Virus record (IMG/VR): IMGVR_UViG_3300042359_000853
Coordinates: 124,001-188,000 of that record
Strand: one strand, 5' to 3'
Length of the DNA stretch: 64,000 nt
The notes beneath the pieces are model-generated. The model saw nothing but the letters and a program-made list of their open reading frames with translations. It ran no database searches and had not been told where the DNA came from. Below, in pieces: positions 13,404 through 33,216 of this stretch; the stretch's first letter is position 1, and every line of letters begins with the position of its first letter. Both the position numbers and the translations under genes were made by a program.

Positions 13404-14276
13404 TTAAGTGGTTTGAAGAAGAAAGTCGAGTTTTTCGTTACGAATAAAACAAGTTGTCATACGCATAATTTTTTGTGCTTCTTTTTTTATAACGTGAGAA
13501 TCTTCGTTAGAAAATATCTGTAAATATAGTGTAAAAACATCAAACGCGTCTAGGCTAAAATCATTTTCTCTAGTGAAAATAATATCTTTACTCTGTGTAT
13601 ATAAAACTTGTTTTTGCGAAGGTGTTAAATCCTTTAGTATCCTACGACCAAAAATTAAAACTTTCTTAAAGGCATCAAACTTTTTGTGATCTGATTTATT
13701 ATCCTTTTCACAAAGAATACGCCTGATATTTGAAATCATAACTCTTTGACCAACCAAACTGTTGATAGCTGAGATTTGTTCTAAAAAAGTTTCACTTACT
13801 AGATTTGATGAAACTTTATCAGCCGCTCTTGTTACACCAGTCAAATGTTTCTTATAGAGGGAAAAGTTTCTATCTGAAAAAACGATTTGTTTATTGCTGT
13901 CTTGTGATTGTAGTCCGATATTCAGCTGGAGAGCTCTTGATTTATCAGAAGAAGACAGAATGTAAAAACTTTTGTTCCAAAAAGATCCAGCTACTTCAAC
14001 TTGATCTGAAAGTAGGGTTAAGGACTGAACACCACCACGAATTTGTAGTCGATAAAAACTAATAGTAAAATTTTGTTCGATTTCAAGAATCTTTTCTTTC
14101 ATGAAAGAAGTAATATCAAATATCTCGTATTTATCCGATACTTCCCTTGTTGAAATTACCCTGTCACCCCACTTGGTGACTACCGTATTTGAGACTTTAT
14201 GAATGGTGATTTTTTCGATTTGAGAAAAAAGTTTCTCTCTATCCCAGGCCTTAAAATTTGACATTATCCAATTCAT
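13404..14276 (-). CDS. DUF932-like protein
   Basis: ILSSSDKSRALQLNIGL and YKKHLTG resemble the DUF932 core. Confidence 0.4.
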   Translation of the reverse strand: MNWIMSNFKAWDREKLFSQIEKITIHKVSNTVVTKWGDRVISTREVSDKYEIFDITSFMKEKILEIEQNFTISFYRLQIRGGVQSLTLLSDQVEVAGSFWNKSFYILSSSDKSRALQLNIGLQSQDSNKQIVFSDRNFSLYKKHLTGVTRAADKVSSNLVSETFLEQISAINSLVGQRVMISNIRRILCEKDNKSDHKKFDAFKKVLIFGRRILKDLTPSQKQVLYTQSKDIIFTRENDFSLDAFDVFTLYLQIFSNEDSHVIKKEAQKIMRMTTCFIRNEKLDFLLQTT

Positions 14277-14298
14277 AAGTTTATTTTTATCTACTCAG

Positions 14299-14306
14299 CA
14301 AATATA
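14299..14306 (-). promoter_or_regulatory. Bacteroidota primary-sigma -7 element (TATATTTG)
   Basis: Matches TAnnTTTG, upstream of 13404..14276. Confidence 0.6.
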
Positions 14307-14336
14307 GAGAGGAATGAATGGAGTTGTATATTAAAT

Positions 14337-15203
14337 TTAGGTTAAGTTTGTGTAGTTCATCACCAAAACTTCGGTTGCTCGTGATTGTTTTTGTCCACTT
14401 TTAGCCATCGCTGCTTTTGCGAACTCTTGCTGAGTCCATCGGTAACTATCCTTAGGAAACCACTCTTCGAGCTCATTAAAGGGATAATAAGATAGTGAAA
14501 ATTTTCCCGAGATTGATTTTAGACAATTTGCTAGACGAAGATGGTCTCGAGAAGTAAAATCGTGATTGGAATAGTAGGATCCCTCACCGACTTTCCAATA
14601 GGGTGGATCGCAATAGAAATAAGTATCAGGTGAATCTAAGAGAGTAATGATCTGTTCAAAATCAAGCCGATAAACATCGGTTATTAGAGAAAACTTTTCG
14701 CACCATTTATCATTCTCTAGTTTATTGATAAAAGATTGAAACTTCGAGTGGTATTTACCCTTCAGATCAATATATCCTGAAGTCTTGGGATTTGCTCCTG
14801 AGAAGATATTAGAAAGAATCAGCGCGTGTTTGGCAGCTCTTTCGAGATTTGGGACTTCTTCTATTTTGGATTCATCACCATAGAGCTCTCGTTGAGATTG
14901 TAAAAAAAAGTTTTTAGTATCTAAAGATGAACCTACACCCTTTTTTTGATAGGGAAAACTTTTACATATTTCTAAAACACCTTTAGGATCTTGACGAAGA
15001 CTTAGAAAAAGATTGTAGTTCAAGGGGTTCAAATCGTTATAGACAATCCTTTCAAGGTGTGGGTAGTTATCCAAGTTCATTCCGAAATAAGTCCAGAACA
15101 TACCCGAGAAAGTTTCTACATAAGTTTTGATATTTTTTGGTATTTCGGGTATAATCAACTTTTTAGCTATTTGACTTTTACCACCGATATAGGGAAGGCA
15201 CAT
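14337..15203 (-). CDS. dam: DNA adenine methyltransferase (Dam/D12 class), copy 1
   Basis: PYIGGKS, ETFSG, YNDLN, CDPPY. Confidence 0.9.
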   Translation of the reverse strand: MCLPYIGGKSQIAKKLIIPEIPKNIKTYVETFSGMFWTYFGMNLDNYPHLERIVYNDLNPLNYNLFLSLRQDPKGVLEICKSFPYQKKGVGSSLDTKNFFLQSQRELYGDESKIEEVPNLERAAKHALILSNIFSGANPKTSGYIDLKGKYHSKFQSFINKLENDKWCEKFSLITDVYRLDFEQIITLLDSPDTYFYCDPPYWKVGEGSYYSNHDFTSRDHLRLANCLKSISGKFSLSYYPFNELEEWFPKDSYRWTQQEFAKAAMAKSGQKQSRATEVLVMNYTNLT

Positions 15204-15793
15204 TAATCTAGTTCTCCTTTCATTGCTTTTATTTTATCTCGGATCTGAGATGCGATCTCGTAGTCTTCTTCTTCGAGTGCTTTATCGAGCATTTTCTGAA
15301 GATTTTCTAAAGTTACTTTAGGAGAAGAGCCTTGTTTTTTTGGCTGTTGAGGTTCGGATGCCTCTTCATCTAGATCAGGGATCAACCCGTAGATTTCCAT
15401 TACTTCAGATGAAACATAAATAGGAAGTTCTAGTTTTGCTGCTAGACAAAGAGCATCTCCTACACCTACATTGATCTCAATTTCTCCTTCTTGTGAGTTT
15501 GTAATAACTTTAGTATAAAAAATTCCCTCGAAAACAGAGTGTAAATAAACCGCATCCATCGTAAAGTTGTGATTAGTTGAGAGCGATTCAAAAAGATCCC
15601 AAACAAAAACTTTTTGAGTTTCTATTTTTTCAAGTTGAAGTGCGATAAACTGAGCTTCTCTATCACGAACAATCACCGGTAGTTTTCTATCACCACTCTC
15701 TTCTTCAAGAACAACGATATAGTTATCACCCATCGATTGGGTCTGTGATAGACCGATTATATTACACTCTATTTTCTTTTGGAAATTTGACAT
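15203..15793 (-). CDS. Bifunctional nuclease (DUF151) with C-terminal UVR domain
   Basis: VLEEESGDRKLPVIV..EAQFIA..GDALCLA..PIYV; LDKALEEEDYEIASQIRDKI. Confidence 0.85.
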   Translation of the reverse strand: MSNFQKKIECNIIGLSQTQSMGDNYIVVLEEESGDRKLPVIVRDREAQFIALQLEKIETQKVFVWDLFESLSTNHNFTMDAVYLHSVFEGIFYTKVITNSQEGEIEINVGVGDALCLAAKLELPIYVSSEVMEIYGLIPDLDEEASEPQQPKKQGSSPKVTLENLQKMLDKALEEEDYEIASQIRDKIKAMKGELD

Positions 15794-15837
15794 TTGTTAT
15801 TTTATGATTTTATCTTAAAAGGTTGCGAACAAAAAAG

Positions 15838-15869
15838 AAAAAAAACCTGGACAGAATCCAGGTTTTTTT
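15838..15869. terminator. Intrinsic terminator hairpin (bidirectional geometry)
   Basis: AAAAAAAACCTGGA-CAGAA-TCCAGGTTTTTTT. Confidence 0.85.
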
Positions 15870-15870
15870 C

Positions 15871-17058
15871 TTACATTTTTACCTTACTCTCGGTAGTAGT
15901 TGGTGGTTTGTTGATCCGTTGAATGTTCAGTAGGACATCTTTGAAGGCGCTAAGGAATTTTTTCACCTTTGGGTTTGAGATTTGATCCGTTGGGTCGTCT
16001 AAAATCCATAGTAGATAAGCTGTGAGTTCATCATCACCAAGACGCTTTAGAAACTTTGTGAGGTTTGTTAGTTGCTTATCGGATAGATTACCAACAGCAA
16101 ATTCTGGTTCTTTTAAGGATTGAACAAGTTCAGAGTTCTTATCACGGTTGTATTTATCTAGTATTTCTGAAACCTCATCATACCTATTGAGAACGTCACG
16201 AATACTCACACTCATCATTTCTTCACAATATTGTAGAAAACGTTGAGCTCCATTTCCAACATACGAGTGGGAAACTTCTCGTAGATAATCAATGAACATA
16301 TTCACTGAAGATTCTTTACCGAAGTTCTGAACAATAAAATCACTCAAGAAAGTCCAAGAACGAGGTGTAGCGTATGCTTTTGTATTTTCGGTTGGATTCT
16401 GATACAGCTTATCAGGGTAAGCTTTAAGATAAGAGATAATCAAGGGGTGAACCCACTTTGACGCAAAGTCTGTTTGCCAATCGTTCGCAGAGAGTGAGTG
16501 AGACATATGAATAAGACGGTTGTTCAACGCATTGTCGAACTCTTCTACGTCTGTTCCATCTTCGTCACCAAGGTTACCAGAGGCCATCATTAAAACGTTA
16601 CTATTAAACTTGAAGTCACCAATCTCACGCTCAAGTAAGATCTGAAGAGCTGCGTTTCTTACAAATTGCGGAGCTCTGTTCAACTCTTCGAAGTGAATAA
16701 TGGTGGGTTGAGAGTTAGCTTTCAGAGCCCACTCTGGTGTAGAATATCCGTGACACTTCCTAGAGACACCATCGATATCTACTTCTTTAAGGTAGGGAAA
16801 CTTAAAGTCGGTTTCATCAGACATCGATAGACGTAAATCCATATACTGGAAATTCATCTTGTCTGCGATAGACCTGGCGATAGCTGATTTAGCGATACCA
16901 GGTTTTGAGGTAATATAAAGAACACCACTCTTAGGCCACATACACATAAAATATAAACGCTCTCTACGGGTGAGTTCCCGCATTCTTTGGGAGATCTCTT
17001 CGGGAAGAGCTGTGGTCACTGGAAGTGGATTTGGATTTTTTGGAGACATTTTAGCCAT
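15871..17058 (-). CDS. MoxR-like AAA+ ATPase
   Basis: SKPGIAKS (variant Walker A), IIHFEELNRA (Walker B), ASGN, DNALNNR, ATPRSW. Confidence 0.9.
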   Translation of the reverse strand: MAKMSPKNPNPLPVTTALPEEISQRMRELTRRERLYFMCMWPKSGVLYITSKPGIAKSAIARSIADKMNFQYMDLRLSMSDETDFKFPYLKEVDIDGVSRKCHGYSTPEWALKANSQPTIIHFEELNRAPQFVRNAALQILLEREIGDFKFNSNVLMMASGNLGDEDGTDVEEFDNALNNRLIHMSHSLSANDWQTDFASKWVHPLIISYLKAYPDKLYQNPTENTKAYATPRSWTFLSDFIVQNFGKESSVNMFIDYLREVSHSYVGNGAQRFLQYCEEMMSVSIRDVLNRYDEVSEILDKYNRDKNSELVQSLKEPEFAVGNLSDKQLTNLTKFLKRLGDDELTAYLLWILDDPTDQISNPKVKKFLSAFKDVLLNIQRINKPPTTTESKVKM

Positions 17059-17074
17059 AGTTCGTTTTTTTTTA

Positions 17075-17106
17075 CAAAGATAAGAAGATTTTTGGTAGAA
17101 AACAAA
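17075..17106 (-). promoter_or_regulatory. Bacteroidota primary-sigma promoter TTTG-N20-TATCTTTG
   Basis: Both elements with canonical spacing upstream of the MoxR gene. Confidence 0.75.
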
Positions 17107-17124
17107 TATTTAATGAAAATATTT

Positions 17125-17487
17125 TTAGAAAGGATATTGATTGGATTCTAACTTTACCGATCCAGAAATCAACTGGTCTAATACCCAGGCTAGATTATAG
17201 ACATCACAACTACCAAGATTGATATAATCCTCTTCTTGAGAGATAAGACAAACTTTATTATTGTGGTATCCTAAACTACAAATACTTAACGATTCAGTAT
17301 CATAGGCATCGTCGTATCCATTTACTAATCTATCTAAACGAAAAGAGGTTGGAAGATTAAGCCTGGAATCTTTGTCTTCGATTAAAAAACTTACCTTCTG
17401 TGCGATAAGGTTGATCATTTCTGATTGGAGATCTTGAATTTTTTGTCTAAACATCTTTTTTGTTTTTAGTCCAGCAAATATATCCAA
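17125..17487 (-). CDS. Hypothetical protein
   Basis: ORF in tight minus-strand operon. Confidence 0.55.
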   Translation of the reverse strand: MDIFAGLKTKKMFRQKIQDLQSEMINLIAQKVSFLIEDKDSRLNLPTSFRLDRLVNGYDDAYDTESLSICSLGYHNNKVCLISQEEDYINLGSCDVYNLAWVLDQLISGSVKLESNQYPF

Positions 17488-17493
17488 GATTTT

Positions 17494-18084
17494 CTAAATA
17501 TCCAAAGAATCTGAAAAGTTTTTTTCGACTTGTATGTTTTTTAGGGAGACAACAGGCTTGACACGCTCAAAAACCTTTTCAACCTGACCTAGATTGGATA
17601 GATTATCAATAGTTCCGGGTTTTATGGAATATTTGATAGTTTCTGTAAGTATTTTGGATTTGTCTTCTGGTGATATTTCATCTGACATTCCGATCATCTC
17701 TTGTAGTATAGGTAGATACTTCTCTACCATTTCAGAGGATATAGACCATTCGTGTGTTTCTTGAATAGCATCTCTACCAAGTTCAGATTCGACCAAAGAT
17801 TTAGTGGTCTCATTTAGAGAGATATACCTATCACTCGGAACGAAAAGAACACTTGAAACTTCACTTTCTCTTTGTGAATAAACTTTCAGAGAACCTGGAT
17901 TCATACGAGAATTTTCATACATCCGGCACCACTCGACTTTAGCTACTTCTTTGACTTGGTCGGTCAGAGTAGATACGATGTTCTCTCTTTCTTTGATCTC
18001 AAGATTGAGTTTATGTATTTGTGAAACCCTCGAAAAAAATAGTGGATCTTTAGTTTCTACGGATATTTGTAACTTTTTAGGCAT
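17494..18084 (-). CDS. Hypothetical protein
   Basis: ORF in operon, overlapping start/stop. Confidence 0.6.
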   Translation of the reverse strand: MPKKLQISVETKDPLFFSRVSQIHKLNLEIKERENIVSTLTDQVKEVAKVEWCRMYENSRMNPGSLKVYSQRESEVSSVLFVPSDRYISLNETTKSLVESELGRDAIQETHEWSISSEMVEKYLPILQEMIGMSDEISPEDKSKILTETIKYSIKPGTIDNLSNLGQVEKVFERVKPVVSLKNIQVEKNFSDSLDI

Positions 18085-18490
18085 ATTGTAACTCTTTGTA
18101 TTTTAATGATTTTACACTCTTTAGATTAGAGCAAAGATACGCTCTAAAAAAACGATTACCAAAATTAGTTCCTTGAATCTCAACTAGATAACTTTGGTCT
18201 GAAACTTTTTTAACTGAAATTTTAGTCTCGTTTGTATGCCAGTAAGGATACCTTACTACACCGGTGCTTCTTGTGTTTCGAAGTGTATTCTCAAATTGTA
18301 ACCGATCGACCTCTCCTTTTCCAAATAAGTTCTCAAAATATTCATCTAGATGCCTAGCTTCTGATTCATCAAAGTTCCAGAGTTTTTTGTCAGTCAATAG
18401 ATGTTCAATCTCTGATGATGTTATTGGCAGAGTATCTGATGAAAAGGTAGTAGAGAGAGTTGTGTAGTAATCTGATTGTGTTGAAAACAT
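18077..18490 (-). CDS. Hypothetical protein
   Basis: ORF in operon. Confidence 0.55.
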   Translation of the reverse strand: MFSTQSDYYTTLSTTFSSDTLPITSSEIEHLLTDKKLWNFDESEARHLDEYFENLFGKGEVDRLQFENTLRNTRSTGVVRYPYWHTNETKISVKKVSDQSYLVEIQGTNFGNRFFRAYLCSNLKSVKSLKYKELQYA

Positions 18491-18507
18491 AAATATTTTT
18501 TACAAGG

Positions 18508-19554
18508 TTAGGCGATATTCATTGTAGCTCCAGCTTGACCGATGAAACTCTTTTCTGCTATTTCAAGAGCTTCAGATATTACTCTTACAATACGATAGGG
18601 ATCAGCGTTCGAAGCTGGTCTTCTATCTTCAACATACCCACGCCAGTCTTTGGCTGTTTGTAGTGGAACACGAAGTGATGCGCCTCTATCAGAGACACCC
18701 CAACTAAACGTATCAATAGACTGGGTTTCGTGTTTACCGGTAAGACGAAGTTCATTAGAAGAGCCGTAGTTTGAGATATGCTCTTTGTGTCGTGTCTCAA
18801 AGGTGTTAAATAGTATATCAAAATAATCCTTACCACCAACTTCACGCATCATGGTATTAGAGAAGTTGCAGTGAAGACCACTGCCATTCCAATCACCAAC
18901 AACTGGTTTCGGGTGAAACTCAATTGAAAATCCCCACTTTTCTGAAAGTCTTTGTAGAAAATGACGAGCTACCCAAAGATCATCACTAGCGCGTCTGGAC
19001 GAAGTATTGAAAATCTGAAACTCCCACTGACCTAGGAGAACTTCAGCGTTGGTTCCTGTGATTTTAAGACCGGCATCCAAACAATGCTCTAAATGTTCAG
19101 ATACAAATTTTCTCCCGTGAACTTGATCACTACCAACACCGCAGTAATACTTACCTTGTGGTTGAGGATATCCATTCTGTGGAAAACCAAGAGGTCTTCC
19201 ATCGAGCATAATAGTATATTCTTGTTCGAAACCATACCAAGTATCATCCTTCTCGGGAGTTAAGTGTCGAGTATTACTCTCATGTGGTGTTCCATCTGGA
19301 TTATAAACTTCACAAAGAACTAAATAAGAGGTATAGTATCCGTAATCTACCGTGTTCGGGTAGAGTGATACTGGTTTTAAGATCCTATCAGAGTAATGAC
19401 CCTCTGCTTGTTGAGTAGATGAACCGTCGAAAGACCATTCTGGACAATCTTCAATAGAGAAGTTTTCTTCATCAATCTCTAAAATTTTTACCTTACTTCG
19501 AAGGTTTGGCTCTGGTCGATATCCATCTAGCCATACATATTCAAGTTTTATCAT
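18508..19554 (-). CDS. glnII: Glutamine synthetase type II
   Basis: KLEYVWLDG, WSFDGSST, GFEQEY, YYCGVG, NAEV..GQWEFQ, HPKP..GDWNGSGLHCNFS, RLTGKHET, DRGAS, EDRRPASN. Confidence 0.96.
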   Translation of the reverse strand: MIKLEYVWLDGYRPEPNLRSKVKILEIDEENFSIEDCPEWSFDGSSTQQAEGHYSDRILKPVSLYPNTVDYGYYTSYLVLCEVYNPDGTPHESNTRHLTPEKDDTWYGFEQEYTIMLDGRPLGFPQNGYPQPQGKYYCGVGSDQVHGRKFVSEHLEHCLDAGLKITGTNAEVLLGQWEFQIFNTSSRRASDDLWVARHFLQRLSEKWGFSIEFHPKPVVGDWNGSGLHCNFSNTMMREVGGKDYFDILFNTFETRHKEHISNYGSSNELRLTGKHETQSIDTFSWGVSDRGASLRVPLQTAKDWRGYVEDRRPASNADPYRIVRVISEALEIAEKSFIGQAGATMNIA

Positions 19555-19562
19555 ATATTTAG

Positions 19563-19868
19563 TTATTTTTTTGTAACATAAAAATCCTCAGCGCCTTCGT
19601 ATCGTTCAACAAGATTATTATCCAAAAGAAACTTCACTAGATGTGTAGTTTGAGTATCTGAAATTTTAAGAGTTCTTGAAATAAGATCTTTGTGACAGGG
19701 CCTTCTAAGCTTAGCAAGTATTTTATCAATAGATTTTTGATCGGGAATTGTTGAAATCACCTTTTGGTAACTATCTCTAGCTAAGTTCATTTTTTGATTG
19801 ACTAGAAGATTAATATCTTCTGAAGATTTTCCTAAAATTTCCTCTTCGGTAAGTGTTATTGATATCAT
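19563..19868 (-). CDS. Small protein, possible winged-helix C-terminus
   Basis: ISRTLKISDTQTTHLVKFLLDNNLVE. Confidence 0.45.
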   Translation of the reverse strand: MISITLTEEEILGKSSEDINLLVNQKMNLARDSYQKVISTIPDQKSIDKILAKLRRPCHKDLISRTLKISDTQTTHLVKFLLDNNLVERYEGAEDFYVTKK

Positions 19869-19879
19869 AATTTTTTTAT

Positions 19880-20945: not shown

Positions 20946-20950
20946 TTAAC

Positions 20951-22231
20951 TTAGTCATTTTCTTTGCCTTCGATAATGATTTGCTTGAGCTTACCATTAC
21001 TTCGAGCTATTGGGCATTCCCTATTTACAGAAATAATCAAAACTTTACCTTTTACTCTTGAAAGATCTAAATGATCGGTTTCACCATCAGTAAGAATAAC
21101 CGAGTTACAATCGTTGTGATTTTTTACAATATGATCGATCATCGGTTGTAGGCAAGTTCCACCAAGACCTTTGATAGGAATACTCTGAAGTTTTTTAGCA
21201 TTTTTGATATTCTGAACCCATTTAACTTCGGTATCAGATTCCATAAAGTTCATTTCGATATCGTTACGATTAACATATGAAAGAACCCGCTCAAAAGTTC
21301 CCTGACCACCCATTGAACCACTGGTATCTAAACCGACATTGATTCGGTTTTTCATTTTACGAACACCTTTGACACCTTGAATACTTCTGCGGTTAGGTCT
21401 TACGATAGTTTTGTTCTTGATAGTTCCAAAGATCAAATTTGAAATAGCTCTTTTGATATAGGATAGGTAATCTTTTCTTTTCTTACGAAGTTTATTGAGT
21501 GTTTTTTCTACGTTAAAACTACTAAGACCACGACTATGTAACCTATCAATAGCGTCTTTTACCATTGACTCTCTTTGCTCTTCTGAGATTTCATCAGTGA
21601 TGTGAACATCAAGATACTGACCAGAGTTTTTTTCTAGATTATCTAAGATACTATCTAATGAGTGTGTGTCAATGGTTCCACCAGGTGATTTAGGATCTTT
21701 ACCAAAAGGTCCATAACTACCACTATTCTGATCTTTACCACCATTTTTTTGACGCTCTTCTTGTTTATCACGAAGCCACTCGTAGAGCTCTTCAAAAATA
21801 AGATTACCTTCGTATTCTTTCGGAACAAAAAGTGCCATATTCTTACCCTCTTCGTCTTTGGGGATCTCAATGAAATCTGGCAGAATATCCTCTACGATAA
21901 TATGGTTGATGATCATGTCCTGTGCGATATTGGATAGTTTAGGATCGTATTGGCCAGTAATCGTTCTACGAGGATGGTTTAGAAGCAGGTGAAAATCTTC
22001 GTGAAGTGTAATAAAGTTGATCTCTCTTTGAGTGAGACGATTTAGAAAAGAACTAGAATAAAAGAAGTTCATACCCTTTGCTGTCATATTCACCGCACAG
22101 GTTCCGATATTTTCATCTTCTTTAAAGTTAATAAAAAGATTGAAGTTACCGTAAAAGGGTAAATTGACACGGCTATCAATCAGCATACTTTGAACCGATT
22201 CGAGAAGTTTCTCGTGTATGTTTTTAATCAT
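20951..22231 (-). CDS. DUF2201-like metallopeptidase + VWA-like protein (MoxR partner)
   Basis: LHEDFH (HExxH), NIAQDMIIN, RPNRR, LDTSGSM (MIDAS), GLGGT, LTDG. Confidence 0.88.
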   Translation of the reverse strand: MIKNIHEKLLESVQSMLIDSRVNLPFYGNFNLFINFKEDENIGTCAVNMTAKGMNFFYSSSFLNRLTQREINFITLHEDFHLLLNHPRRTITGQYDPKLSNIAQDMIINHIIVEDILPDFIEIPKDEEGKNMALFVPKEYEGNLIFEELYEWLRDKQEERQKNGGKDQNSGSYGPFGKDPKSPGGTIDTHSLDSILDNLEKNSGQYLDVHITDEISEEQRESMVKDAIDRLHSRGLSSFNVEKTLNKLRKKRKDYLSYIKRAISNLIFGTIKNKTIVRPNRRSIQGVKGVRKMKNRINVGLDTSGSMGGQGTFERVLSYVNRNDIEMNFMESDTEVKWVQNIKNAKKLQSIPIKGLGGTCLQPMIDHIVKNHNDCNSVILTDGETDHLDLSRVKGKVLIISVNRECPIARSNGKLKQIIIEGKEND

Positions 22232-22246
22232 TTTCTATTTTTTTTA

Positions 22247-24885: not shown

Positions 24886-24890
24886 AAGTG

Positions 24891-24922
24891 CAAATATACA
24901 AAAGATTTCTTAATCAACCAAA
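24891..24922 (-). promoter_or_regulatory. Bacteroidota promoter TTTG-N20-TATATTTG, near-leaderless
   Basis: -7 element ends 5 nt before the ATG at 24885. Confidence 0.65.
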
Positions 24923-25338
24923 ATTTTTTCAATATTTATATCTCTTTTCATAACCATTATTTCTCTTTCGTCTATTAGTGGTTTTGGAAGTTGTCTACCA
25001 CGACCATCTACTAGATTTTCGATACTAATATAATCAAAGTTTGTAGTAGAACAAAGATATAGAAAATCACTATCTCTGATTGAAGAGGGACCATCGGTAA
25101 GTAGTTGATGAGTGATATTCACTATTTCTGTATCAAGACTAAAGTTTCTAAGAGAGGTCTCGTTGAAATCTGGATGTCTATCAACAACTAGAATATAGAG
25201 TAGAATTTTCTCAGCTCTTGGAAGAAGTCGAAATAGTTCTTCAATAGAAACTACATTGAAAAGCCTGTAGGCTTTCACGAAATTGTCGGAAACTTTTATT
25301 TTTCCAGTTTTTTGGTCTTGATTAAGTAGTGATGTCAT
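24910..25338 (-). CDS. Hypothetical protein with C-terminal RDxxIxxIL motif
   Basis: Ends KRDINIEKILVD. Confidence 0.6.
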   Translation of the reverse strand: MTSLLNQDQKTGKIKVSDNFVKAYRLFNVVSIEELFRLLPRAEKILLYILVVDRHPDFNETSLRNFSLDTEIVNITHQLLTDGPSSIRDSDFLYLCSTTNFDYISIENLVDGRGRQLPKPLIDEREIMVMKRDINIEKILVD

Positions 25339-25385
25339 AGTAGGGGGTGTGGTTGTTTATATATATTTCTAAAAAAAGTTTAATC

Positions 25386-26483: not shown

Positions 26484-26509
26484 AAATCTAGGTTTTTATA
26501 TATACCCCT

Positions 26510-27250: not shown

Positions 27251-27330
27251 AATCTCTACTGAAACTCTACCCCTCGGGCATTTGGTCCTTTAGCTCCACC
27301 ACTATATTTTTATCTAAAACATAGAAAACT
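27240..27330 (-). ncRNA. Candidate small non-coding RNA with intrinsic terminator
   Basis: Minus-strand TATCATATATA upstream, GC-richer core AGTGGTGGAGCTAAAGGACCAAATGCCCG, 9-bp hairpin AGGGGTAGA/TCTACCCCT followed by a U-run; no convincing ORF. Confidence 0.4.
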
Positions 27331-27360
27331 TATCTTATATATGATATTTTAGGAAATGGT

Positions 27361-27391
27361 TTTGATATCTAGAACTTTTTATCTATATTTG
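27361..27391 (+). promoter_or_regulatory. Bacteroidota promoter TTTG-N19-TATATTTG
   Basis: Both elements upstream of the ABC transporter. Confidence 0.7.
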
Positions 27392-27404
27392 CTAAAAAAA
27401 ATAT

Positions 27405-29216
27405 ATGATAACCTCTTCAGATAAACAGATATTCTCGAGTATCTGGAAATTTTCAAAGCCTTTTAAACGTGATCTTAGCTCGGTCTTTCTTCTTATTGTT
27501 TTAGTTTCGGTCTTGGATGCGGTAAATCACTACTGCTTGAGTAAGGTATTTGACACAGCTGGCGTAAAATCAGGTCTAGAAAATTCGGTCTGGTGGCTCT
27601 TTTTAGCTGGATTTGCTATGATATCAAAGATATTTTTCTCAAAATGGCGAGAAAAGATTGAGATCCAAAAACTAGATGTGAATGTTTCTAACTTTCTAAA
27701 TAGCTATTCTATATCGAAGTTTTTTACTTTTTCTAACGGCCAACACCTAAACGAGCACTCGGGTATCAAGCAGAATATTATACAAACTGGTTTTGGATCC
27801 TTGAGAAATCAGATGAATGTGTTTATCTACAACCTTGTTCCTACCCTATCGCAGTTTGTAGTTGCTATTTTTATATTTTATTGGATAAATATTTGGATGG
27901 GTATTGGATATACCCTATTTTCTCTATTTTTTGGCTTTATTCTTTTTAGATTTCATAAGTTTTTAACGCCACAGGTTGAGAAGGTAAGAGAAGTTGAAGT
28001 ATCAAACTCAAGGCTAATCTCTGAACTTTATCGGTATGTTGTTCTTATTAAAAATGAAGTAGCCGAAGATAAATCTCTCGGGGATCTCGATACAGCTCAA
28101 ACAAAATACAAAAGCTCTTATAGTCAAACCTGGCTCTCGGCTATTGATAGACTTCTGATTATTCGGCTTTCATCACAGGTGTTCAGATTTTTAAGTATTC
28201 TTTTTTGTGTATATCTTATTTATCAAGACCAAATCACGATGGGATCTATATTTTTAGTTTATCTGTGGTCTGGAAACTACATCAATGCTATTTGGTCTAT
28301 TACCGATCTACAAAAGGGTTATATTACTGATAAAATAAATATACAAAAGTATTTTGATCTGATTGGCACTGAAAGTGATGTGGTTCAAGATAAAAATCCT
28401 ATAACTGAAGGTCTTGTTGGTGATATTGAGTTCAAGAGTGTTCATTTTGCCTATCCTAAAAGAGTTGATAAATATGAAGGTGAAAAGATTTCACCGGATG
28501 AAAAAAACAGTTTTGTTTTAGATGGTATTTCTTTTGTGATACCTAAGGGAAAAAAAGTTGCTTTTGTAGGTGAGTCTGGCTCTGGTAAATCAACAATCGC
28601 AAATCTTATTCGTAGATCTTTCGATCCACAGATGGGAGAGATTTGTGTGAATGGTAACCCCTTGAAAAAGATTGACATCAAAAAGTTTCTCAAAAAGATT
28701 GGTTCAGTTGATCAGGATATTATTCTTTTTGATAGATCACTTCGTGATAATATTTCTTTTGGAACCGGTAAGCGTCTCACTGATGAGGAGCTCTCTAAAG
28801 TTGCTAAGCTATCGGGTATTGATAACTTTTTCACGAAGCTAGAGTTTGGTTGGGATACGATTATCGGTGAGAGAGGAGCTAAACTCTCTGGTGGGGAGCG
28901 TCAAAGAATAGGCATCGCAAGAGCACTTGCTAAAGAACCAGAGATCCTGATTTTTGATGAAGCGACCTCAGCACTTGACTCAAAAAATGAAAAACAAGTA
29001 TCTAAGGCTATTGAAAAATCCTCTTTTGGAAAAACCTCGATTATTATTACACACCGACTTTCAACTGCTCTTGCTTGTGATAAAATATTTGTAATGAGAC
29101 TTGGTAGAATTTTAGACTCTGGTTCTCACGCTGAACTTTTAGAACGGTGTGAATACTACCGAGAACTTGTTAAAAATCAACTCAATCCAAAAAGCGAAAC
29201 AAAAACTGAAGTCTAA
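27405..29216 (+). CDS. ABC exporter, fused TMD + ATPase (MsbA-like)
   Basis: TM N-half; GESGSGKS, LSGGERQR, ILIFDEATSALD, ITHRLST. Confidence 0.95.
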   Translation: MITSSDKQIFSSIWKFSKPFKRDLSSVFLLIVLVSVLDAVNHYCLSKVFDTAGVKSGLENSVWWLFLAGFAMISKIFFSKWREKIEIQKLDVNVSNFLNSYSISKFFTFSNGQHLNEHSGIKQNIIQTGFGSLRNQMNVFIYNLVPTLSQFVVAIFIFYWINIWMGIGYTLFSLFFGFILFRFHKFLTPQVEKVREVEVSNSRLISELYRYVVLIKNEVAEDKSLGDLDTAQTKYKSSYSQTWLSAIDRLLIIRLSSQVFRFLSILFCVYLIYQDQITMGSIFLVYLWSGNYINAIWSITDLQKGYITDKINIQKYFDLIGTESDVVQDKNPITEGLVGDIEFKSVHFAYPKRVDKYEGEKISPDEKNSFVLDGISFVIPKGKKVAFVGESGSGKSTIANLIRRSFDPQMGEICVNGNPLKKIDIKKFLKKIGSVDQDIILFDRSLRDNISFGTGKRLTDEELSKVAKLSGIDNFFTKLEFGWDTIIGERGAKLSGGERQRIGIARALAKEPEILIFDEATSALDSKNEKQVSKAIEKSSFGKTSIIITHRLSTALACDKIFVMRLGRILDSGSHAELLERCEYYRELVKNQLNPKSETKTEV

Positions 29217-29221
29217 AAATC

Positions 29222-29518
29222 ATGAGAGAAGAAGCCATCCACAAAAGTTGTCGTAGAACTATCCGCCAAAAATTTGAAGAGCTCAGAGTAGGTCAATTTA
29301 GTATTGATATACTAGCTCATTTTTTACAAAACAAATCTAAAAAACTTCGTGATATTGAACGGGAAACACCTTACAAAAAGATTTATTTAGAAGAAGCACA
29401 AAGAATGATTTCGCTTGTCCATAAAGCTAAACGAGTATCTAAAACATTTAATATTCGTAGTAATGACCATAAAAAGAGGTGGAAACTTCTAGATATTTTA
29501 GAAAGATTAGAAAAATAA
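29222..29518 (+). CDS. Small basic hypothetical protein
   Basis: ORF directly after the ABC gene. Confidence 0.5.
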   Translation: MREEAIHKSCRRTIRQKFEELRVGQFSIDILAHFLQNKSKKLRDIERETPYKKIYLEEAQRMISLVHKAKRVSKTFNIRSNDHKKRWKLLDILERLEK

Positions 29519-29566
29519 TATATAGTTAGACTACATGGCCAGTAGATATAAAAAAATTCAGTCATT

Positions 29567-29737
29567 ATGAATACAATCAACAAAGAGCAGTTTATGGGTC
29601 TAATCAGACACGCGCTCACATTCGTAGGTGGTGTCTTGGTTATGCGTGGAGATCTCGACGCAGTAGGTCAAGAGCAACTTATCGGTTCAGTGATGACCCT
29701 AGCCGGACTTGTCTGGTCTTACTGGGTGAAAAGATAA
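29567..29737 (+). CDS. Putative small holin, 56 aa, 2 TM (not in ORF track)
   Basis: MNTINKEQFMGLIRHALTFVGGVLVMRGDLDAVGQEQLIGSVMTLAGLVWSYWVKR; IRHxLTxxGG..G..WS pattern of small phage holin-like proteins. Confidence 0.7.
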   Translation: MNTINKEQFMGLIRHALTFVGGVLVMRGDLDAVGQEQLIGSVMTLAGLVWSYWVKR

Positions 29738-29757
29738 AGAAAATCTTTCAAGTTACT

Positions 29758-29790
29758 AAAGACCTACACAAAAAATGTAGGTCTTTTTTT
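29758..29790 (+). terminator. Intrinsic terminator
   Basis: AAAGACCTACA-loop-TGTAGGTCTTTTTTT. Confidence 0.85.
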
Positions 29791-29816
29791 ATACATACAA
29801 AAAAATAGAATATTTA

Positions 29817-31940
29817 ATGAGACCAAGATCTATTGACGAAGTATGGCGGCAAATGCAAGTAGAAAAGCAACTACAAGAGCAGAGAAGATTCGAACAAGAA
29901 AGAAAAATGTGGGAACAAAGAGAAAGGCAAAGACAAGAATATCTCTTATCCATAAAAATGAATGAGAAGCTAGCACCGACAGTTCCTACTTCAGCAGCTG
30001 CTTCTGCTGGAGGAACAGTTCAGACGATTCAAGATCAAGACTTTCCTACTCTTTTTGGTGAAACACACATGATCACTTGGGCTGATGTATCAACAGATAC
30101 TTGGAAATACATCGTTCATAACTTCAATACTGGTGAGCTTTCTGAAATATTTGATACAGAATTGATATACGATAGTGGCAACGAATGGTATCTTTATGAT
30201 GAATGGCTGGCGGTTTCTGAAAAGGGGCATTCTGTTGTTTTCAGAAAGTCAGGAACCAATTTATATAAGATTTATTTTTTCAACGTAAATGGAGAACTCG
30301 TTGGTCAAAAAGATCTAGAAAGTCGCAAAGATTTTCAATATACCGAAAACGCACAGATATATGTGGGAGATTTGAACGGTCTAGGCACTGTTTATCATTT
30401 TGATGGTGATAATGTAAGAACTCATACGTTTGAGGGTCTGAGTGCATCTTCTATCGAAGTTGATGATTTTGGTGAAGATGATGTAACAAAAGATGGTAGC
30501 GTCATAATTGAGGCGCCAGATAATAGTAAAACATTCATAGCCAGGCCTAGTGGTGAGTTAGTAGAGATAACCTCTGATATCCAAGGTGCAAATCAAGTTT
30601 TATTAGATTATAACACAGATTTTTTATTTGCAGTAGATCAAGATCTTTGGGTAAAGTCGATTTCACAAGGGGGAGAGCTAAAAAATACGATGGATTTATC
30701 ACCTTATAATATAGAGAATTGGAATGAGATTTCTCTGTATGGTGATAACTGTGCTTACGTGCTTCTCACTTCGTATGATAGCTACAGAATGCTTGTTTCT
30801 TATGATGGTGATTCTAATCAGTTTGTTTCTATTACTTTTTCTGATTCTCTGATATATGATATCAGCTATCACGAAAGAAGCTGGCAATCGCCAAGACCTT
30901 ACTTCGGTAAAACTTTGATACTGACTACCTATCAGAGTAGAGCAGATAACTATATAAGTGGATTTGAGGGTTCAGGAGTAGAAATCAGTTGGTTACTGAA
31001 AAGTGCAGATGAATTTCAATCCTATATGTTTAGTGGAACTGTTTCATTTTTTGAAAGTGGTGGCAACTGGGTTGGTGATCGAACTTTTGCTATAGGTGAA
31101 AATCCAATGGTTATGTTCGCATACACACAAAGTGTTATTCAGGCAGGGTTTCTTCTATCTTCTGGATTTTTCACACAATCAACAGGCGTTACCTTGTCTC
31201 TCTGCTCAAATATTTGGGGAAAACCGATTGGCGATCATTCGTTTGCTGTTTTTGATGTTTTGGATGATAGAGTTTGGCAGGTCTATGATCAAAACTCTAT
31301 TGTTTCACAAACATCTTCTAGTTCTGCTTGGTCGTGGGGAACTAGTAACTGGGATGTCAATCGTTATGGAACACTTTTAGTTTTAGGTGGTGGTGGTAAT
31401 AATTTTGCTTACACAACAGAAATTGGATTGACTTCGGCACCAAGTGATATAAATATTATTTATAATAATGTGAATTGGGGCGACAGAACTGGTATTTCTA
31501 CTGAATATCAAATAGGCGTTCGTTATATTCCAGGTCAAGAGGGAAATGCTTACGTAGCTGGATTTTATGTTTTATCTAGGTCTGGTTTTTCTTCTTATGA
31601 AGAGTTCCCCTTTACTGGTCTTTCTCCTAGTATCCCACACACAATTTCTGGGATTGAAATAGGAACCGAAATTGTTTCTTTTAATTTGATAAATCAGGAT
31701 AATTCGAACTTAAGATGTATTGTTTATGACCTTTCTACACTTGGATTAATTGATGATTATGATACCGAACAATCTACCGATGTTTATATCCAATCTTGGA
31801 AAAACAGAGTAGCTGTTATTAAACAAAATGCTAATGAAAGACAGATTAAATTCATAGGAAAACACGGAATACAAACAAAAAAGGTTGATGCGAATAGTTT
31901 TTCAGATGAATCCAACGATCCAAGAGACAATGATGATTAA
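29817..31940 (+). CDS. Beta-rich (propeller-like) putative virion protein with N-terminal charged helix
   Basis: R/Q/E helix, SAAASAGG linker, then aromatic-rich beta strands. Confidence 0.55.
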   Translation: MRPRSIDEVWRQMQVEKQLQEQRRFEQERKMWEQRERQRQEYLLSIKMNEKLAPTVPTSAAASAGGTVQTIQDQDFPTLFGETHMITWADVSTDTWKYIVHNFNTGELSEIFDTELIYDSGNEWYLYDEWLAVSEKGHSVVFRKSGTNLYKIYFFNVNGELVGQKDLESRKDFQYTENAQIYVGDLNGLGTVYHFDGDNVRTHTFEGLSASSIEVDDFGEDDVTKDGSVIIEAPDNSKTFIARPSGELVEITSDIQGANQVLLDYNTDFLFAVDQDLWVKSISQGGELKNTMDLSPYNIENWNEISLYGDNCAYVLLTSYDSYRMLVSYDGDSNQFVSITFSDSLIYDISYHERSWQSPRPYFGKTLILTTYQSRADNYISGFEGSGVEISWLLKSADEFQSYMFSGTVSFFESGGNWVGDRTFAIGENPMVMFAYTQSVIQAGFLLSSGFFTQSTGVTLSLCSNIWGKPIGDHSFAVFDVLDDRVWQVYDQNSIVSQTSSSSAWSWGTSNWDVNRYGTLLVLGGGGNNFAYTTEIGLTSAPSDINIIYNNVNWGDRTGISTEYQIGVRYIPGQEGNAYVAGFYVLSRSGFSSYEEFPFTGLSPSIPHTISGIEIGTEIVSFNLINQDNSNLRCIVYDLSTLGLIDDYDTEQSTDVYIQSWKNRVAVIKQNANERQIKFIGKHGIQTKKVDANSFSDESNDPRDNDD

Positions 31941-32665
31941 GGAGTCGCTACCCCTTTTTTAGAAACTACTAGAGCAGACATTTCGTTGGCAAATCCAATC
32001 GATGATATAACATCTCCTGTTTTTAGATATTCTATAGAAAAACTAGCTAAAAAAGTATCACCTGCGCCTGAAACATCGATAGTTTCTAGAGGGTTCTTTT
32101 GAGGAAATATAACACCTCTATACCTACTGCCACGAGAGCCTAGTGTTATAATCAGGTTATTATCATCTAGATGTTTGTTGATATCTCTTTCACTATCGTT
32201 TAGCTTAATAAAGGTGAATAGACTAGCTAGTTGCTGATCTAACTTTTTCTTTGTATCAAGTATAGATATCTTAGAACTTCTAGCTATAAGCTCTAGAATT
32301 TGGGAATTCAGAAATCCCTTATTGTAATCAGAAACTATCACTAGATCGAAAGTTGATAAATCTGGTAAGTTTTCAAGAGTCTTACAGGGATTATTTTCAC
32401 CTTCATCAATTCTCAAAAACATATGGTTTGATTTTTTATCAACATATCTTGTCTTAGTAATCAAATCTTCTTGATGTAGGGAAAAAATATCAACTTCTTT
32501 ACTCAATGCTTCTAAATTTTTAGCAACATTTCCGGCCATTCCTGGATTTTCTATGATCTCTACCGGTTTTACAACTGGAACAGGCGCCTCTGGTGATAAT
32601 CTTGATGATGAGCAGTAGATAAATCTATCCAAACAAATCTCACCAATCACTGCTATTTTCTTCAC
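31937..32665 (-). CDS. rfaE: D-glycero-D-manno-heptose-7-phosphate kinase (HldE/RfaE domain I, PfkB family)
   Basis: IGEICLD..RLSPEAPVPVV..GMAGNVA..VSDYNKG..DVSGAGDT. Confidence 0.9.
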   Translation of the reverse strand: MKKIAVIGEICLDRFIYCSSSRLSPEAPVPVVKPVEIIENPGMAGNVAKNLEALSKEVDIFSLHQEDLITKTRYVDKKSNHMFLRIDEGENNPCKTLENLPDLSTFDLVIVSDYNKGFLNSQILELIARSSKISILDTKKKLDQQLASLFTFIKLNDSERDINKHLDDNNLIITLGSRGSRYRGVIFPQKNPLETIDVSGAGDTFLASFSIEYLKTGDVISSIGFANEMSALVVSKKGVATP

Positions 32666-32921
32666 CTAAAATATAGTTTATTTTTTTATCTCTAAACTTC
32701 TTTTTACCATTTTTTATAGGTAGAATATAATGATTCCAACTTTGGAGAGATATCCAGTTAGATTTTGATACATCTATTTTTTCACCTTTACAAAATATCT
32801 GAAACTTATTATCATTGCTGCTACTTAAAATAATATCATGACCTTGAGGTAGAGTAACATCTCTATCACCATCTCTAAAGGTAACATCTCTCCAAACATG
32901 ATAGTAGCTGGTGTGATCCAT
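32640..32921 (-). CDS. Small hypothetical with C-terminal RDKKINYIL motif
   Basis: ORF in operon. Confidence 0.6.
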   Translation of the reverse strand: MDHTSYYHVWRDVTFRDGDRDVTLPQGHDIILSSSNDNKFQIFCKGEKIDVSKSNWISLQSWNHYILPIKNGKKKFRDKKINYILGEENSSDW

Positions 32922-32922
32922 A

Positions 32923-33216
32923 TTATTCTTCTATTATTTTAGAGATTTGTTTATCTCTTGTATAGCTCGTGAACCAATCTAAACGAATACATCTTTTATC
33001 ATTATCTAAACGAAAGATATGACCTTCTCTCGATCCAGTCTCGATGATTGATATTGTTTCTGGTTTTGCGTCTGAGAGTTTAATCCAATTCATCCAATCT
33101 AAATTAACAAAATCAAATTTTTGACCCTTTTTCAGAGGAATCTCTAGAAAAGCTCTTGGATCGATTGTTGGAAACGAAAGAGTAAAATCTTCAAGTGCTA
33201 TATAAGTAATCGTCAT
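32923..33216 (-). CDS. Small hypothetical with C-terminal RDKQISKII motif
   Basis: ORF in operon. Confidence 0.6.
   Translation of the reverse strand: MTITYIALEDFTLSFPTIDPRAFLEIPLKKGQKFDFVNLDWMNWIKLSDAKPETISIIETGSREGHIFRLDNDKRCIRLDWFTSYTRDKQISKIIEE

Follow-up and report, generated by a model that had tools for sequence, protein, structure and literature searches.

Short terminal peptides which are shared by otherwise unrelated proteins and read by a common machine are found in several systems. In phage T4 the capsid targeting sequence (CTS) of the internal proteins IPI, IPII, IPIII and Alt is a constant tag of about 10 residues that is read by phage machinery, whereas the bodies behind it diversify rapidly. 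The CTS is N-terminal, is cleaved off by the prohead protease and marks a handful of proteins. Clp degrons and adaptor docking peptides, such as the ssrA tag, the MuA-type C-motifs and the XB peptide of SspB, are short C-terminal elements that hand proteins, or adaptors with their cargo, to a Clp unfoldase; ssrA-type tags need a free, non-polar C-terminus, and the XB peptide binds the zinc-binding N-domain of ClpX. In the poxvirus ankyrin-PRANC (F-box-like) proteins and other viral substrate adaptors a large family of variable target-binding bodies carries a constant C-terminal module that plugs into a degradation machine, the PRANC module being a domain of about 50 residues that binds host Skp1 in eukaryotes. 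Finally, encapsulin cargo-loading peptides and microcompartment encapsulation peptides are short, often amphipathic helical termini which are appended to unrelated cargo proteins and read by one shell protein, and encapsulin shells share the HK97 fold with phage capsids.

Here we describe a tail of 9 residues (R-D-x-K-I-x-x-I-L) which lies at or near the C-terminus of many small, otherwise unrelated proteins in one clade of huge freshwater phages and whose reader has not been identified. Different from the CTS it is C-terminal and helical, has no recognised cleavage site, marks about 100 proteins per genome and is found on membrane proteins as well. It has no sequence resemblance to the Clp recognition peptides, although a Clp ATPase, ClpP and even a tmRNA are encoded by the phages. 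Compared with PRANC, the constant part is only 9-13 residues, the bodies are not one repeat family, and the machine would be a bacterial-type Clp protease encoded by the phage. The consensus differs from that of the encapsulin peptides, which are G/S/L-rich and extended and mark a few cargo proteins encoded next to the shell gene, while no shell gene is linked to the carriers described here. Literature searches, including a term search of the text of the huge-phage paper (PMC7162821), found no description of the motif.

A near-C-terminal motif in a huge-phage fragment and its relatives

The stretch of DNA analysed (the window, 64,000 nucleotides) is part of a 227,583-bp fragment, about 39% complete, of a T4-like huge phage from lake water, which is present in at least 16 lake-water runs. 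Coding density under translation table 11 is 93-96% and no alternative genetic code was needed. A sequence-only reading had proposed that four non-homologous ORFs of the window share the C-terminal motif R(D/N)x(K/N/Q)(I/L)xx(I/F)(L/I), and this observation is confirmed and proves to be much larger than first seen. All four ORFs exist on the minus strand and carry the peptides in question, with two corrections: the motif is near rather than at the C-terminus, and the first member does not fit the proposed consensus, having L instead of I/F at position 8, and is a degenerate copy.

The first carrier (13404-14276, 290 aa) ends in FIRNEKLDFLLQTT, in which the degenerate tail RNEKLDFLL (codons 13416-13442) is followed by three residues (QTT) and the stop. 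It is the only carrier in the window with orthologues in relatives that include a tail-less phage, with 46% identity to LR745206, 45% to LR756502 and 25% to LR756500. The LR745206 and LR756502 orthologues end in ..SIRNSVLESLGI, whereas the orthologue in the tail-less LR756500 ends just before the tail, as would be expected of an appended module. The second carrier (24910-25338, 142 aa) ends in KRDINIEKILVD, with the tail RDINIEKIL (codons 24919-24945) followed by two residues (VD); its orthologues in LR745206 (..VRDAKIDIINEK) and LR756502 (..VRDAKIENLLEES.., in which 19 more residues follow the tail) are about 35% identical in the body, and its ESM Atlas model is poor. The third carrier (32640-32921, 93 aa) ends in FRDKKINYILGEENSSDW, with the tail RDKKINYIL (codons 32667-32693) followed by eight residues (GEENSSDW). 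It has no homologue in the four relatives. Contigs 100% identical to this stretch in two freshwater RNA libraries cover 32537-32782. The fourth carrier (32923-33216, 97 aa) ends in TRDKQISKIIEE, with the tail RDKQISKII (codons 32932-32958) followed by two residues (EE), and lies directly downstream of the gene for a T4 gp52-like topoisomerase II subunit (33218-34570). Only homologues of 89% identity or more were found for it among 5.8 billion proteins, and its AF2 model is unusable (pLDDT 49).

The sequence-only reading had stated in advance that lack of genome-wide enrichment at C-termini, relative to shuffled or internal positions, would speak against the motif. The outcome is the opposite. 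The proposed pattern occurs 7 times in the 251 crudely called genes of the fragment, and all 7 occurrences lie within 10 residues of a C-terminus, whereas residue shuffles give 0.32 hits in all and 0.023 in that zone (binomial P = 1.4e-10). Four of the hits lie outside the window, where the motif had not been defined, and all four are in the zone (P = 2.4e-6), which makes an independent test. No hits were found in N-terminal zones or in reversed sequences, and a broader pattern gives 11 of 15 hits in the zone (P = 4e-13).

The scale is larger still in related phages. Carriers make up 108 of 969 proteins in LR745206 and 96 of 993 in LR756502, and LR756504 has 39, mostly with the variant R-K-x-K-I-x-x-L-L, while LR756500, LR756501 and two cultured T4-like phages have none. 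In LR745206 there are 131 hits, 108 of them within 10 residues of the end and 82 within 0-3 residues, as compared to 12.7 expected in the whole proteome; LR756502 and LR756504 behave alike. The motif ends 0-10 residues before the stop (mode 1-3) and is followed mostly by D, K, N, E or G, with 11-20 more residues in a few proteins.

The carriers are small (median about 100 aa, range 46 to 731 aa), and between 6 and 11% of them have a transmembrane-like segment. BLAST without the tails finds no similarity among the four proteins of the window. Among nine tail-bearing proteins compared at an early stage only the pair at positions 2432/2688 of the fragment is detectably related, and no pair was found among the 66 carriers compared across the three phages. 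No Pfam family was found above threshold in any of the 42 carriers scanned (12 from the fragment and 30 from relatives), and PHROGs, run on the 12 carriers of the fragment only, gave weak hits, none of them significant. Searches for more distant relatives gave little: megablast of the window against phage records gave no match, a word search with a tail region found 2 close homologues only, and the ESM Atlas gave nothing above noise. A profile of 13 tails, without those of the GenBank phage records, found only a near-identical protein among 1.84 billion representatives, the motif being too short for significance, and a profile of 78 tails against PDB sequences gave a best E of 0.31.

One carrier (fragment positions 2688-2936) folds confidently in an AF2 model (pLDDT 84) as an SH3-like barrel with strands 10-13, 29-35, 41-45, 52-55 and 63-65, followed by a terminal helix 66-80 that holds the motif. 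The top Foldseek hits are all SH3 domains (probability about 1.0, target-normalised TM up to 0.69), though E is only 0.01-0.05, and several carriers have an SH3-like N-terminal pattern.

Constraint on the tail at the protein level

In 28 orthologue pairs between LR745206 and LR756502 the tail is 68% identical and the body 36%, and most of the 13 homologues scored as tail-less still carry a degenerate tail. The conserved positions 1, 2, 4, 5, 8 and 9 share one helix face. Substitutions are conservative (I/L/V), and the conserved positions are always in frame and just before stops. Arg is encoded by AGA, AGG and CGN at genome-wide frequencies, and the codons for K4 and I5 likewise follow background usage (p = 0.93, 0.15 and 0.68 for W01), so that selection acts on the protein.

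An alternative is that the conserved stretch is a nucleotide-level element, such as a promoter, a translation-coupling site or a recombination site at gene ends, with the peptide as a by-product. The genes are tightly packed, so that tails lie just upstream of the next start, and there is a weak synonymous bias at positions 8-9 (ATA in 58 of 70 against 36.6 expected, with TTA favoured) which is not explained by a general 3'-end effect or by codon-pair context. This bias shows that something at the nucleotide level also acts there. However, in addition to the codon usage at R1, K4 and I5, the three x positions vary at all three bases, and the distance to the stop and to the next start varies from 0 to more than 60 nt. 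A pure DNA element is therefore largely refuted and most unlikely.

It is also possible, though unlikely, that the tail has no common partner, and that all carriers descend from one old small-protein family whose last recognisable piece is the C-terminal helix, kept for the folding or self-association of each protein on its own. In favor of this, carriers occur in tandem arrays (27 adjacent pairs against 12 expected in LR745206), some share the SH3-like pattern, and in the one good model the tail is part of a confident helix. Then again, the wide range of lengths and the presence of membrane proteins do not fit well, and the conserved 290-aa protein has the tail only in tail-bearing phages. 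Moreover, independent self-association does not require the same Arg, Lys and aliphatic residues in 100 proteins, and cross-pairing would be selected against.

Candidate readers of the tail

The sequence-only reading interpreted the motif as a convergent amphipathic helix serving as a sorting, degron or adaptor-binding signal, for example for a phage or host AAA+ machine or a scaffold, and named a MoxR/VWA pair as a possible partner. This interpretation is partly supported. A near-C-terminal motif with helical periodicity, which sits on proteins without detectable homology and is under much stronger constraint than their bodies, is what a signal of this kind recognised in trans would look like, and a phage-encoded AAA+ machine does co-occur with it. 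This machine, however, is a ClpC-like Hsp100 with ClpP. The DUF2201/VWA protein in the window is also conserved in a tail-less relative and hence is not specifically linked, and no MoxR-type ATPase was recognised near it in the window. Convergence is not shown, as the tail may equally be one ancestral module kept while the bodies diverged, or may have spread by duplication in tandem arrays.

We favor the view that the tail, [I/L]-R-[D/E/N]-x-K-[I/L]-[N/D]-x-[I/L]-L followed by 0-10 mostly polar residues and the stop, is a clade-specific short linear motif that forms the last two to three turns of a C-terminal amphipathic helix and is attached to 5-11% of all proteins in these huge Bacteroidota-type phages, mostly small, fast-evolving accessory proteins of unknown function. 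Its invariant Arg, the Lys and the three aliphatic residues would dock by one helix face onto one common partner, so that the tail works as an address or docking tag. What our analysis establishes is the motif itself, its terminal position, abundance and clade distribution, purifying selection at the protein level and the co-occurrence with Clp and Hsp70 genes; docking of the helix in trans, the identity of the partner and a role as degron or adaptor are our inferences. We consider recognition in trans likely, but the Clp machine as the reader, although our preferred candidate, is doubtful, and the explanation as a whole is tentative.

The candidate ATPase (fragment positions 72471-74600) is a class-I Hsp100 protein of ~710 aa. 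It matches Pfam AAA, AAA_lid_9, UVR, AAA_2 and ClpB_D2-small, keeps a ClpC-like UVR middle domain, and has an (L/V)-G-F loop where ClpA and ClpC contact ClpP. It lacks the usual N-terminal adaptor domain, as it aligns to the ClpA, ClpB and ClpV models only from about residue 140 and has just a 45-residue acidic leader, which is missing in LR756504. A docking mode like that of the XB peptide, which binds the N-domain of the unfoldase, is thus not matched by this two-ring enzyme. The ATPase is present in the fragment, LR745206, LR756502 and LR756504 and absent from the tail-less LR756500, and ClpP genes are present in the three complete tail-bearing genomes. Nine of 11 tail-bearing IMG/VR records carry the ATPase or ClpP, the two that do not being 13% and 30% complete, and none of 7 tail-less AT-rich records carries either. 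The R-K variant of LR756504 is the kind of drift expected with a co-evolving partner.

This link is correlative only. The association is confounded by shared ancestry, since the tail-bearing records probably form one clade and LR756500 was the only within-clade tail-less genome available. Two tail-bearing records rated 91-94% complete (G006 and G007) have the ATPase but no ClpP, another (G009), rated 83% complete, has ClpP but no ATPase, and LR756501 and Salicola phage SCTP-2 have Clp-type ATPases without tails. There is no physical or structural evidence for any partner: the one complex prediction, of the fragment's ATPase with an 82-aa carrier, scored 0.00, a value that counts neither for nor against binding, and a hexamer was not modelled. 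In addition, classic Clp degrons sit at the very C-terminus with a free carboxylate and end in non-polar residues, a feature that the tails described here do not share. Were the Clp machine nevertheless the reader, the tail would be either a degron that lets the phage clear a whole class of its own early or accessory proteins or the constant docking end of adaptors whose variable bodies bring targets to the protease.

The phage Hsp70 (fragment positions 12051-13928, 807 bits) co-occurs with the tail just as well. It is among the best-conserved clade proteins, is present in every large tail-bearing genome and is absent from LR756500, and the tail might recruit this DnaK-type chaperone to marginally stable young proteins. 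However, LR756501 has Hsp70 but no tails, the helical periodicity of the conservation contrasts with the binding of extended peptides by Hsp70, and the tail is rich in Asp, Glu and Asn, which DnaK disfavours. We therefore regard an Hsp70 client tag as very unlikely.

Could the tail be a signal for packaging into the virion? The phage has T4-type head genes, namely a gp20 portal (Portal_T4, 171 bits), a gp23 major capsid protein (97 bits) and a weak prohead-protease match (Peptidase_S77). T4 internal proteins likewise are polymorphic bodies behind a constant short terminal peptide, and huge capsids have room for cargo, so that diverse small proteins might be directed into the prohead and injected with the DNA. 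On the other hand, about 100 different cargo species is far more than in any known case, some carriers are membrane-protein-like, and carriers do not cluster with head genes. Nor does the tail share the N-terminal position of the T4 signal or its removal at an L/I-x-E site, as position 7 is Glu in only about 14% of tails and there is no consistent I-x-E site. We consider this reading unlikely.

We cannot exclude that the tail docks onto another hub, either a conserved host protein (RNA polymerase, ribosome, replisome, divisome or a host protease) or a phage protein not identified here, and recruits many host-takeover proteins to one place. The evidence for a tag read in trans applies equally to this possibility, which we consider unlikely but less so than packaging. 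Carriers sit among early-type DNA-metabolism genes and in arrays near genome ends, and the split between R-D and R-K could track different hosts. About 100 clade-specific conserved proteins remain as candidates. No candidate stands out, however. The motif lacks the hydrophobic or aromatic pair of sliding-clamp binding tails (PIP-like, T4 gp45-binding), positions 8-9 being I/L/V with Phe at 7% or less, and the carriers have no recognisable replication domains. A different tail, D-[DE]-L-F-G, on a PD-(D/E)XK nuclease and on a 407-aa protein of unidentified function, fits that role better.

Other candidate readers found little support. A 142-aa weak TPR protein inside the first carrier cluster (fragment positions 3873-4301) has no homologue, and there is no TPR match at all, in five related genomes, and it was rejected. 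The PrkA-YeaH-SpoVR module comprises the best-conserved clade-specific proteins in LR745206, LR756502 and LR756504 but is an unlikely reader, since PrkA is absent from the 97%-complete tail-bearing record G004 and from G006. A search across 120 orthologue sets for a charge swap matching the D-to-K change in LR756504 was not informative, as no protein stood out (PrkA 5:1, GluRS 5:0, Hsp70 0:0), and the phylogenetic profile (present in tail-bearing genomes, absent from LR756500) gave 104 candidates, too many to decide between.

A more far-reaching reading, which is unlikely but not excluded by our data, is that the tail is the constant docking end of a phage-encoded library of about 100 hypervariable substrate adaptors. 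Each small body, SH3-like or other, would bind a different host or phage protein, and the tail would plug it into the phage's own N-domain-less ClpC-like/ClpP protease. This would give huge phages a programmable targeted-degradation system, the bacterial-virus counterpart of poxvirus ankyrin/F-box proteins, and the R-D and R-K dialects would then mark co-evolution with the unfoldase.

Huge phages carry hundreds of small genes that nobody can annotate. Our results show that a tenth of them in one widespread freshwater clade share a single, strongly conserved terminal tag, which groups about 100 orphan proteins per genome into one functional class and gives a direct experimental handle, as a 12-residue peptide can be used to fish for the reader. 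The tag is also a practical marker by which this phage clade can be recognised and true gene ends called in metagenomic contigs. If the reader is the phage's own Clp protease, this would be the first case of a phage marking a large part of its own proteome, or its adaptors, for its own degradation machine, and it would also explain why these phages carry ClpC-like ATPase, ClpP, Hsp70 and tmRNA genes. If the tag is instead a packaging or host-hub signal, that is equally new for phages at this scale.

The phage record and its closest relatives

The window covers bases 124,001-188,000 of a single IMG/VR virus record of 227,583 bp (33.5% G+C; hereafter G000), which is rated 39% complete by CheckV, so that the whole genome is probably near 580 kb, completeness figures here and below being estimates. 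The record belongs to a T4-type phage, as it encodes a gp20 portal, the gp23 capsid protein, both topoisomerase II subunits and two Dam-type methylases. A 524-aa protein (genome 5740-7314, plus strand) ends in a type IX secretion (Por_Secre_tail) sorting domain, which scores 25.7 bits and thus just under the cut-off of 27, and is consistent with a Bacteroidota host. By topoisomerase the nearest relatives are the 634-642-kb 'Mahaphage' genomes LR745206, LR756502 and LR756504 at 50-56% identity, which their describers assigned to Bacteroidetes hosts (PMC7162821). The same DNA occurs in at least 16 lake-water metagenome runs.

The auxiliary genes of the window include a glutamine-synthetase-like protein (window 18508-19554, minus strand), a DUF2201 VWA-like plus metallopeptidase protein (20951-22231, minus strand), which is also conserved in the relative LR756500, a PfkB-family kinase (31937-32665, minus strand), whose GTG start overlaps the end of the 93-aa carrier of the tail described below by 26 nt, and an ABC-type ATPase (27405-29216, plus strand). 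An IS605 OrfB/TnpB-type gene (54011-55180, plus strand; OrfB_IS605 81 bits, Cas12f1-like TNB domain) lies inside the phage genome, and its only homologue among the four relatives examined is found in LR756500 at 47% identity.

A shared tail near the C-terminus of many proteins

The sequence-only reading had described four non-homologous ORFs of the window that end in a common motif, and this observation holds: the four ORFs and their terminal peptides are exactly as described. However, the motif lies 2-8 residues before the stop rather than at the very end, and the first member (RNEKLDFLL) does not fit the pattern that was proposed for it. Absence of enrichment at C-termini relative to shuffled or internal positions had been named in advance as the outcome that would count against the motif. 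We called 251 genes in the whole record by a crude longest-ORF method (96% coverage) and scanned them. The proposed pattern occurs seven times and all seven occurrences lie within 10 residues of a C-terminus, whereas residue shuffling predicts 0.32 hits in total and 0.02 in that zone (binomial P = 1.4e-10). Four of the seven lie outside the window, in sequence on which the motif had not been defined, and all four are terminal (P = 2.4e-6), which amounts to an unbiased replication. None was found in N-terminal zones or in reversed sequences, and looser copies bring the count in this fragment to 12-13.

Four related genomes were then retrieved whole and scanned with one protein pattern, the gene calls again being crude longest-ORF calls. 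Tail-bearing proteins number 108 of 969 in LR745206, 96 of 993 in LR756502, 39 of 951 in LR756504 and 1 of 695 in LR756500. In LR745206, 108 of 131 pattern hits lie within 10 residues of the end and 82 within 0-3 residues, as compared to 12.7 hits predicted by shuffling for the entire proteome. LR756504 mostly uses a dialect, R-K-x-K-I-x-x-L-L. Counts made with a DNA pattern and reversed-pattern controls show no tails in LR756500, LR756501 (735 kb), Salicola phage SCTP-2 or Vibrio phage pv27. A scan of IMG/VR yielded at least 80 loci, and of the 80 inspected fifteen hold genuine terminal tails, all on large (33-476 kb), AT-rich contigs and often with several tails per locus; a follow-up on whole records confirmed 11 tail-bearing records. 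Written around the invariant Arg, the extended logo has K/L, S/Q, E and I/L in the four preceding positions, followed by R (100%), D 53%/E 23%/N 16%, x, K 80%, I 57%/L 42%, N 38%/D 20%, x, I 64%/L 26% and L 73%, and then by polar residues and the stop.

A second, different C-terminal tail is present on a PD-(D/E)XK nuclease (window 11109-11879, minus strand), which ends in GKSDDLFG, and on a 407-aa protein (window 2-1030, minus strand; genome 123807-125030), which ends in SDADELFG. This tail resembles the T4 clamp-binding tail (SLDFLFG). No protein of LR745206 or LR756502 ends this way, although both proteins have orthologues there.

But is it the peptide or the underlying DNA that is conserved? 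The codons for Arg (AGA, AGG and CGN), Lys and the first Ile follow genome-wide synonymous usage (p = 0.93, 0.15 and 0.68, respectively, in LR745206), the three x codons vary at every base, and replacements are conservative (I/L/V). The conserved triplets are always in the gene's own frame, whereas the spacing to the stop and to the next start is variable. Selection therefore acts on the peptide, and a DNA element ranks last among the explanations we consider. Then again, some doubt remains, as the last two motif positions show a synonymous bias to ATA-TTA in all tail-bearing genomes (for instance at window 32667-32672 and 24919-24924): in LR745206 Ile-8 is ATA in 58 of 70 cases against 36.6 expected (p = 2e-6) and Leu-9 leans to TTA. 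Neither a general 3'-end effect nor codon-pair context explains this bias, the cause of which was not identified, and the other conserved positions use background codons.

The carriers and their evolution

The tail-bearing proteins, or carriers, are small (median 97-122 aa, range 46-731) and have an ordinary pI, and between 6 and 11% of them have a transmembrane-like segment, about the same as other small proteins. None of the 42 carriers scanned matched a Pfam family, and PHROGs, run on the 12 carriers of the fragment, gave nothing significant. Without the tail there is no BLAST similarity among 66 carriers, apart from one pair in G000 and two pairs that are the same gene read from overlapping loci. 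A carrier from the window has only near-identical relatives among 5.8 billion proteins. One subfamily (G000 2432-3486) is predicted with confidence (pLDDT 84) to fold as an SH3-like barrel followed by a helix (residues 66-80) that contains the motif, whereas the 97-aa carrier of the window gave no usable model; only proteins of the window's own record were folded, and sequences from the GenBank phage records did not enter the folding or profile searches. Short contigs 100% identical to the window in three freshwater RNA libraries lie over window 32347-32782, which takes in part of the 93-aa carrier gene, and a fourth, near-identical contig (4 differences in 280 nt) overlies the 97-aa carrier gene at 32977-33256. 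This shows presence in RNA libraries but is not proof of transcription.

Carriers are clustered, with 27 adjacent pairs against 12 expected in LR745206, they occur in tandem arrays of up to six, and they are densest near genome ends. In LR756504 an array of six tail-bearing genes (69-130 aa) lies at 606.2-607.6 kb (locus L046); four are clear paralogues, two have hydrophobic segments that look transmembrane, and all end in the R-K dialect, mostly exactly at the C-terminus. In LR745206, around 338825, 357761 and 376472 (loci L015, L016 and L017), three in-frame canonical motifs (RDYKINKILGDD.., RDDKINSIIDGE.., RDLKIGSLLGS..) are followed by 100-113 more residues instead of a stop and may be fusions of a carrier with the next gene.

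Between LR745206 and LR756502, 41 carriers have a homologue. In 28 pairs both members keep a canonical tail, which is 68% identical while the bodies are 36% identical, and most of the other 13 still show a recognizable degenerate tail. Two carriers of the window have orthologues. The 142-aa protein keeps the tail in both relatives, whereas the 290-aa protein has a degenerate tail in LR745206 and LR756502 but its orthologue in tail-less LR756500 ends just before it. Thus, the tail behaves as a separate module, which is present or absent by lineage and is far better conserved than what it is attached to. These comparisons do not separate a convergent origin, as had been suggested, from spread from a single source.

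On a helical wheel derived from the logo, R1, D2, K4, I5, I8 and L9 fall on one face spanning about 160 degrees and the free positions 3, 6 and 7 on the other. An invariant Arg in the middle of an aliphatic stripe argues against a membrane anchor or a simple folding element and is what a docking helix looks like, and the same face on about 100 unrelated bodies argues for one common reader. The sequence-only reading, which took the tail for a convergent amphipathic helix serving as a sorting, degron or adaptor-binding signal, for example for an AAA+ machine, is supported in part. The tail, its position and its conservation are established directly from the sequences, whereas docking onto a partner in trans is our inference from them.

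Candidate readers of the tail

We looked for the reader in three ways. First, in the neighbourhood of the carriers, a weak TPR protein lies inside one cluster, but it is not conserved and no TPR was found in the relatives. The sequence-only reading had also pointed to MoxR/VWA proteins as possible partners, but no MoxR-type ATPase was recognized next to the VWA-like protein of the window. Second, a phylogenetic profile gave 104 proteins that are shared by tail-bearing genomes and missing from LR756500. The best conserved of these form a proteostasis set consisting of Hsp70, a PrkA-SpoVR pair, the gap between which was left unscanned, and a 709-aa class-I Clp/Hsp100 ATPase. In G000 the phage Hsp70 (807 bits) is encoded at genome 12051-13928 (plus strand), a ribosomal protein S21 homologue (63 aa, 54-57% identical across three relatives) at 102235-102426 (plus strand) and a thioredoxin at 76489-76875 (plus strand), and LR745206 additionally encodes PrkA, SpoVR, an EF-G-like GTPase and a Glu/Gln-tRNA synthetase. 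Third, wider co-occurrence weakens two of these candidates, since PrkA is missing from near-complete tail-bearing records and Hsp70 also occurs in tail-less LR756501.

The ATPase (G000 genome 72471-74600, minus strand; 12471-14600 of locus L304) is a two-ring enzyme that lacks the Clp N-domain and has a UVR-type middle domain. It carries an (L/V)-G-F tripeptide, LGF in G000, at the place where the ClpP-docking loop lies in ClpA (IGL) and ClpC (VGF), and it falls below every NCBIfam equivalog cut-off (ClpB, ClpA, ClpV). It is found in G000, in the three complete tail-bearing genomes and in four tail-bearing IMG/VR records, but neither in LR756500 nor in seven tail-less records. Phage ClpP genes, of which relatives carry 2-3, accompany it in the three complete GenBank genomes and in the tail-bearing IMG/VR record G004, and occur without it in five more, less complete, tail-bearing records. 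Counting against the link, two near-complete records lack ClpP, and all tail-bearing records are probably one clade. A single complex prediction, of the ATPase with an 82-aa carrier, returned no answer and so speaks neither for nor against binding.

Taken together, the shared tail is real, statistically overwhelming, conserved across a phage clade found in many lakes and, to our knowledge, undescribed. As to the specific reader, which is not established, we place the phage Clp machine first, with the tail as degron or adaptor dock, followed by an unidentified host or phage hub, then by virion targeting or a self-contained structural helix, and then by Hsp70. The general reading of the tail as a terminal docking tag that is read in trans is well supported by sequence evolution. 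The window also holds a phage-encoded tmRNA (48754-49103, minus strand), for which ARAGORN gives the tag peptide GNTNEVGSVEDLVFALRNNILKANRLAVA and which scores 65 bits against the Rfam RF00023 gathering score of 47 over the full-length model, another sign that these phages manage tagging and proteolysis themselves.
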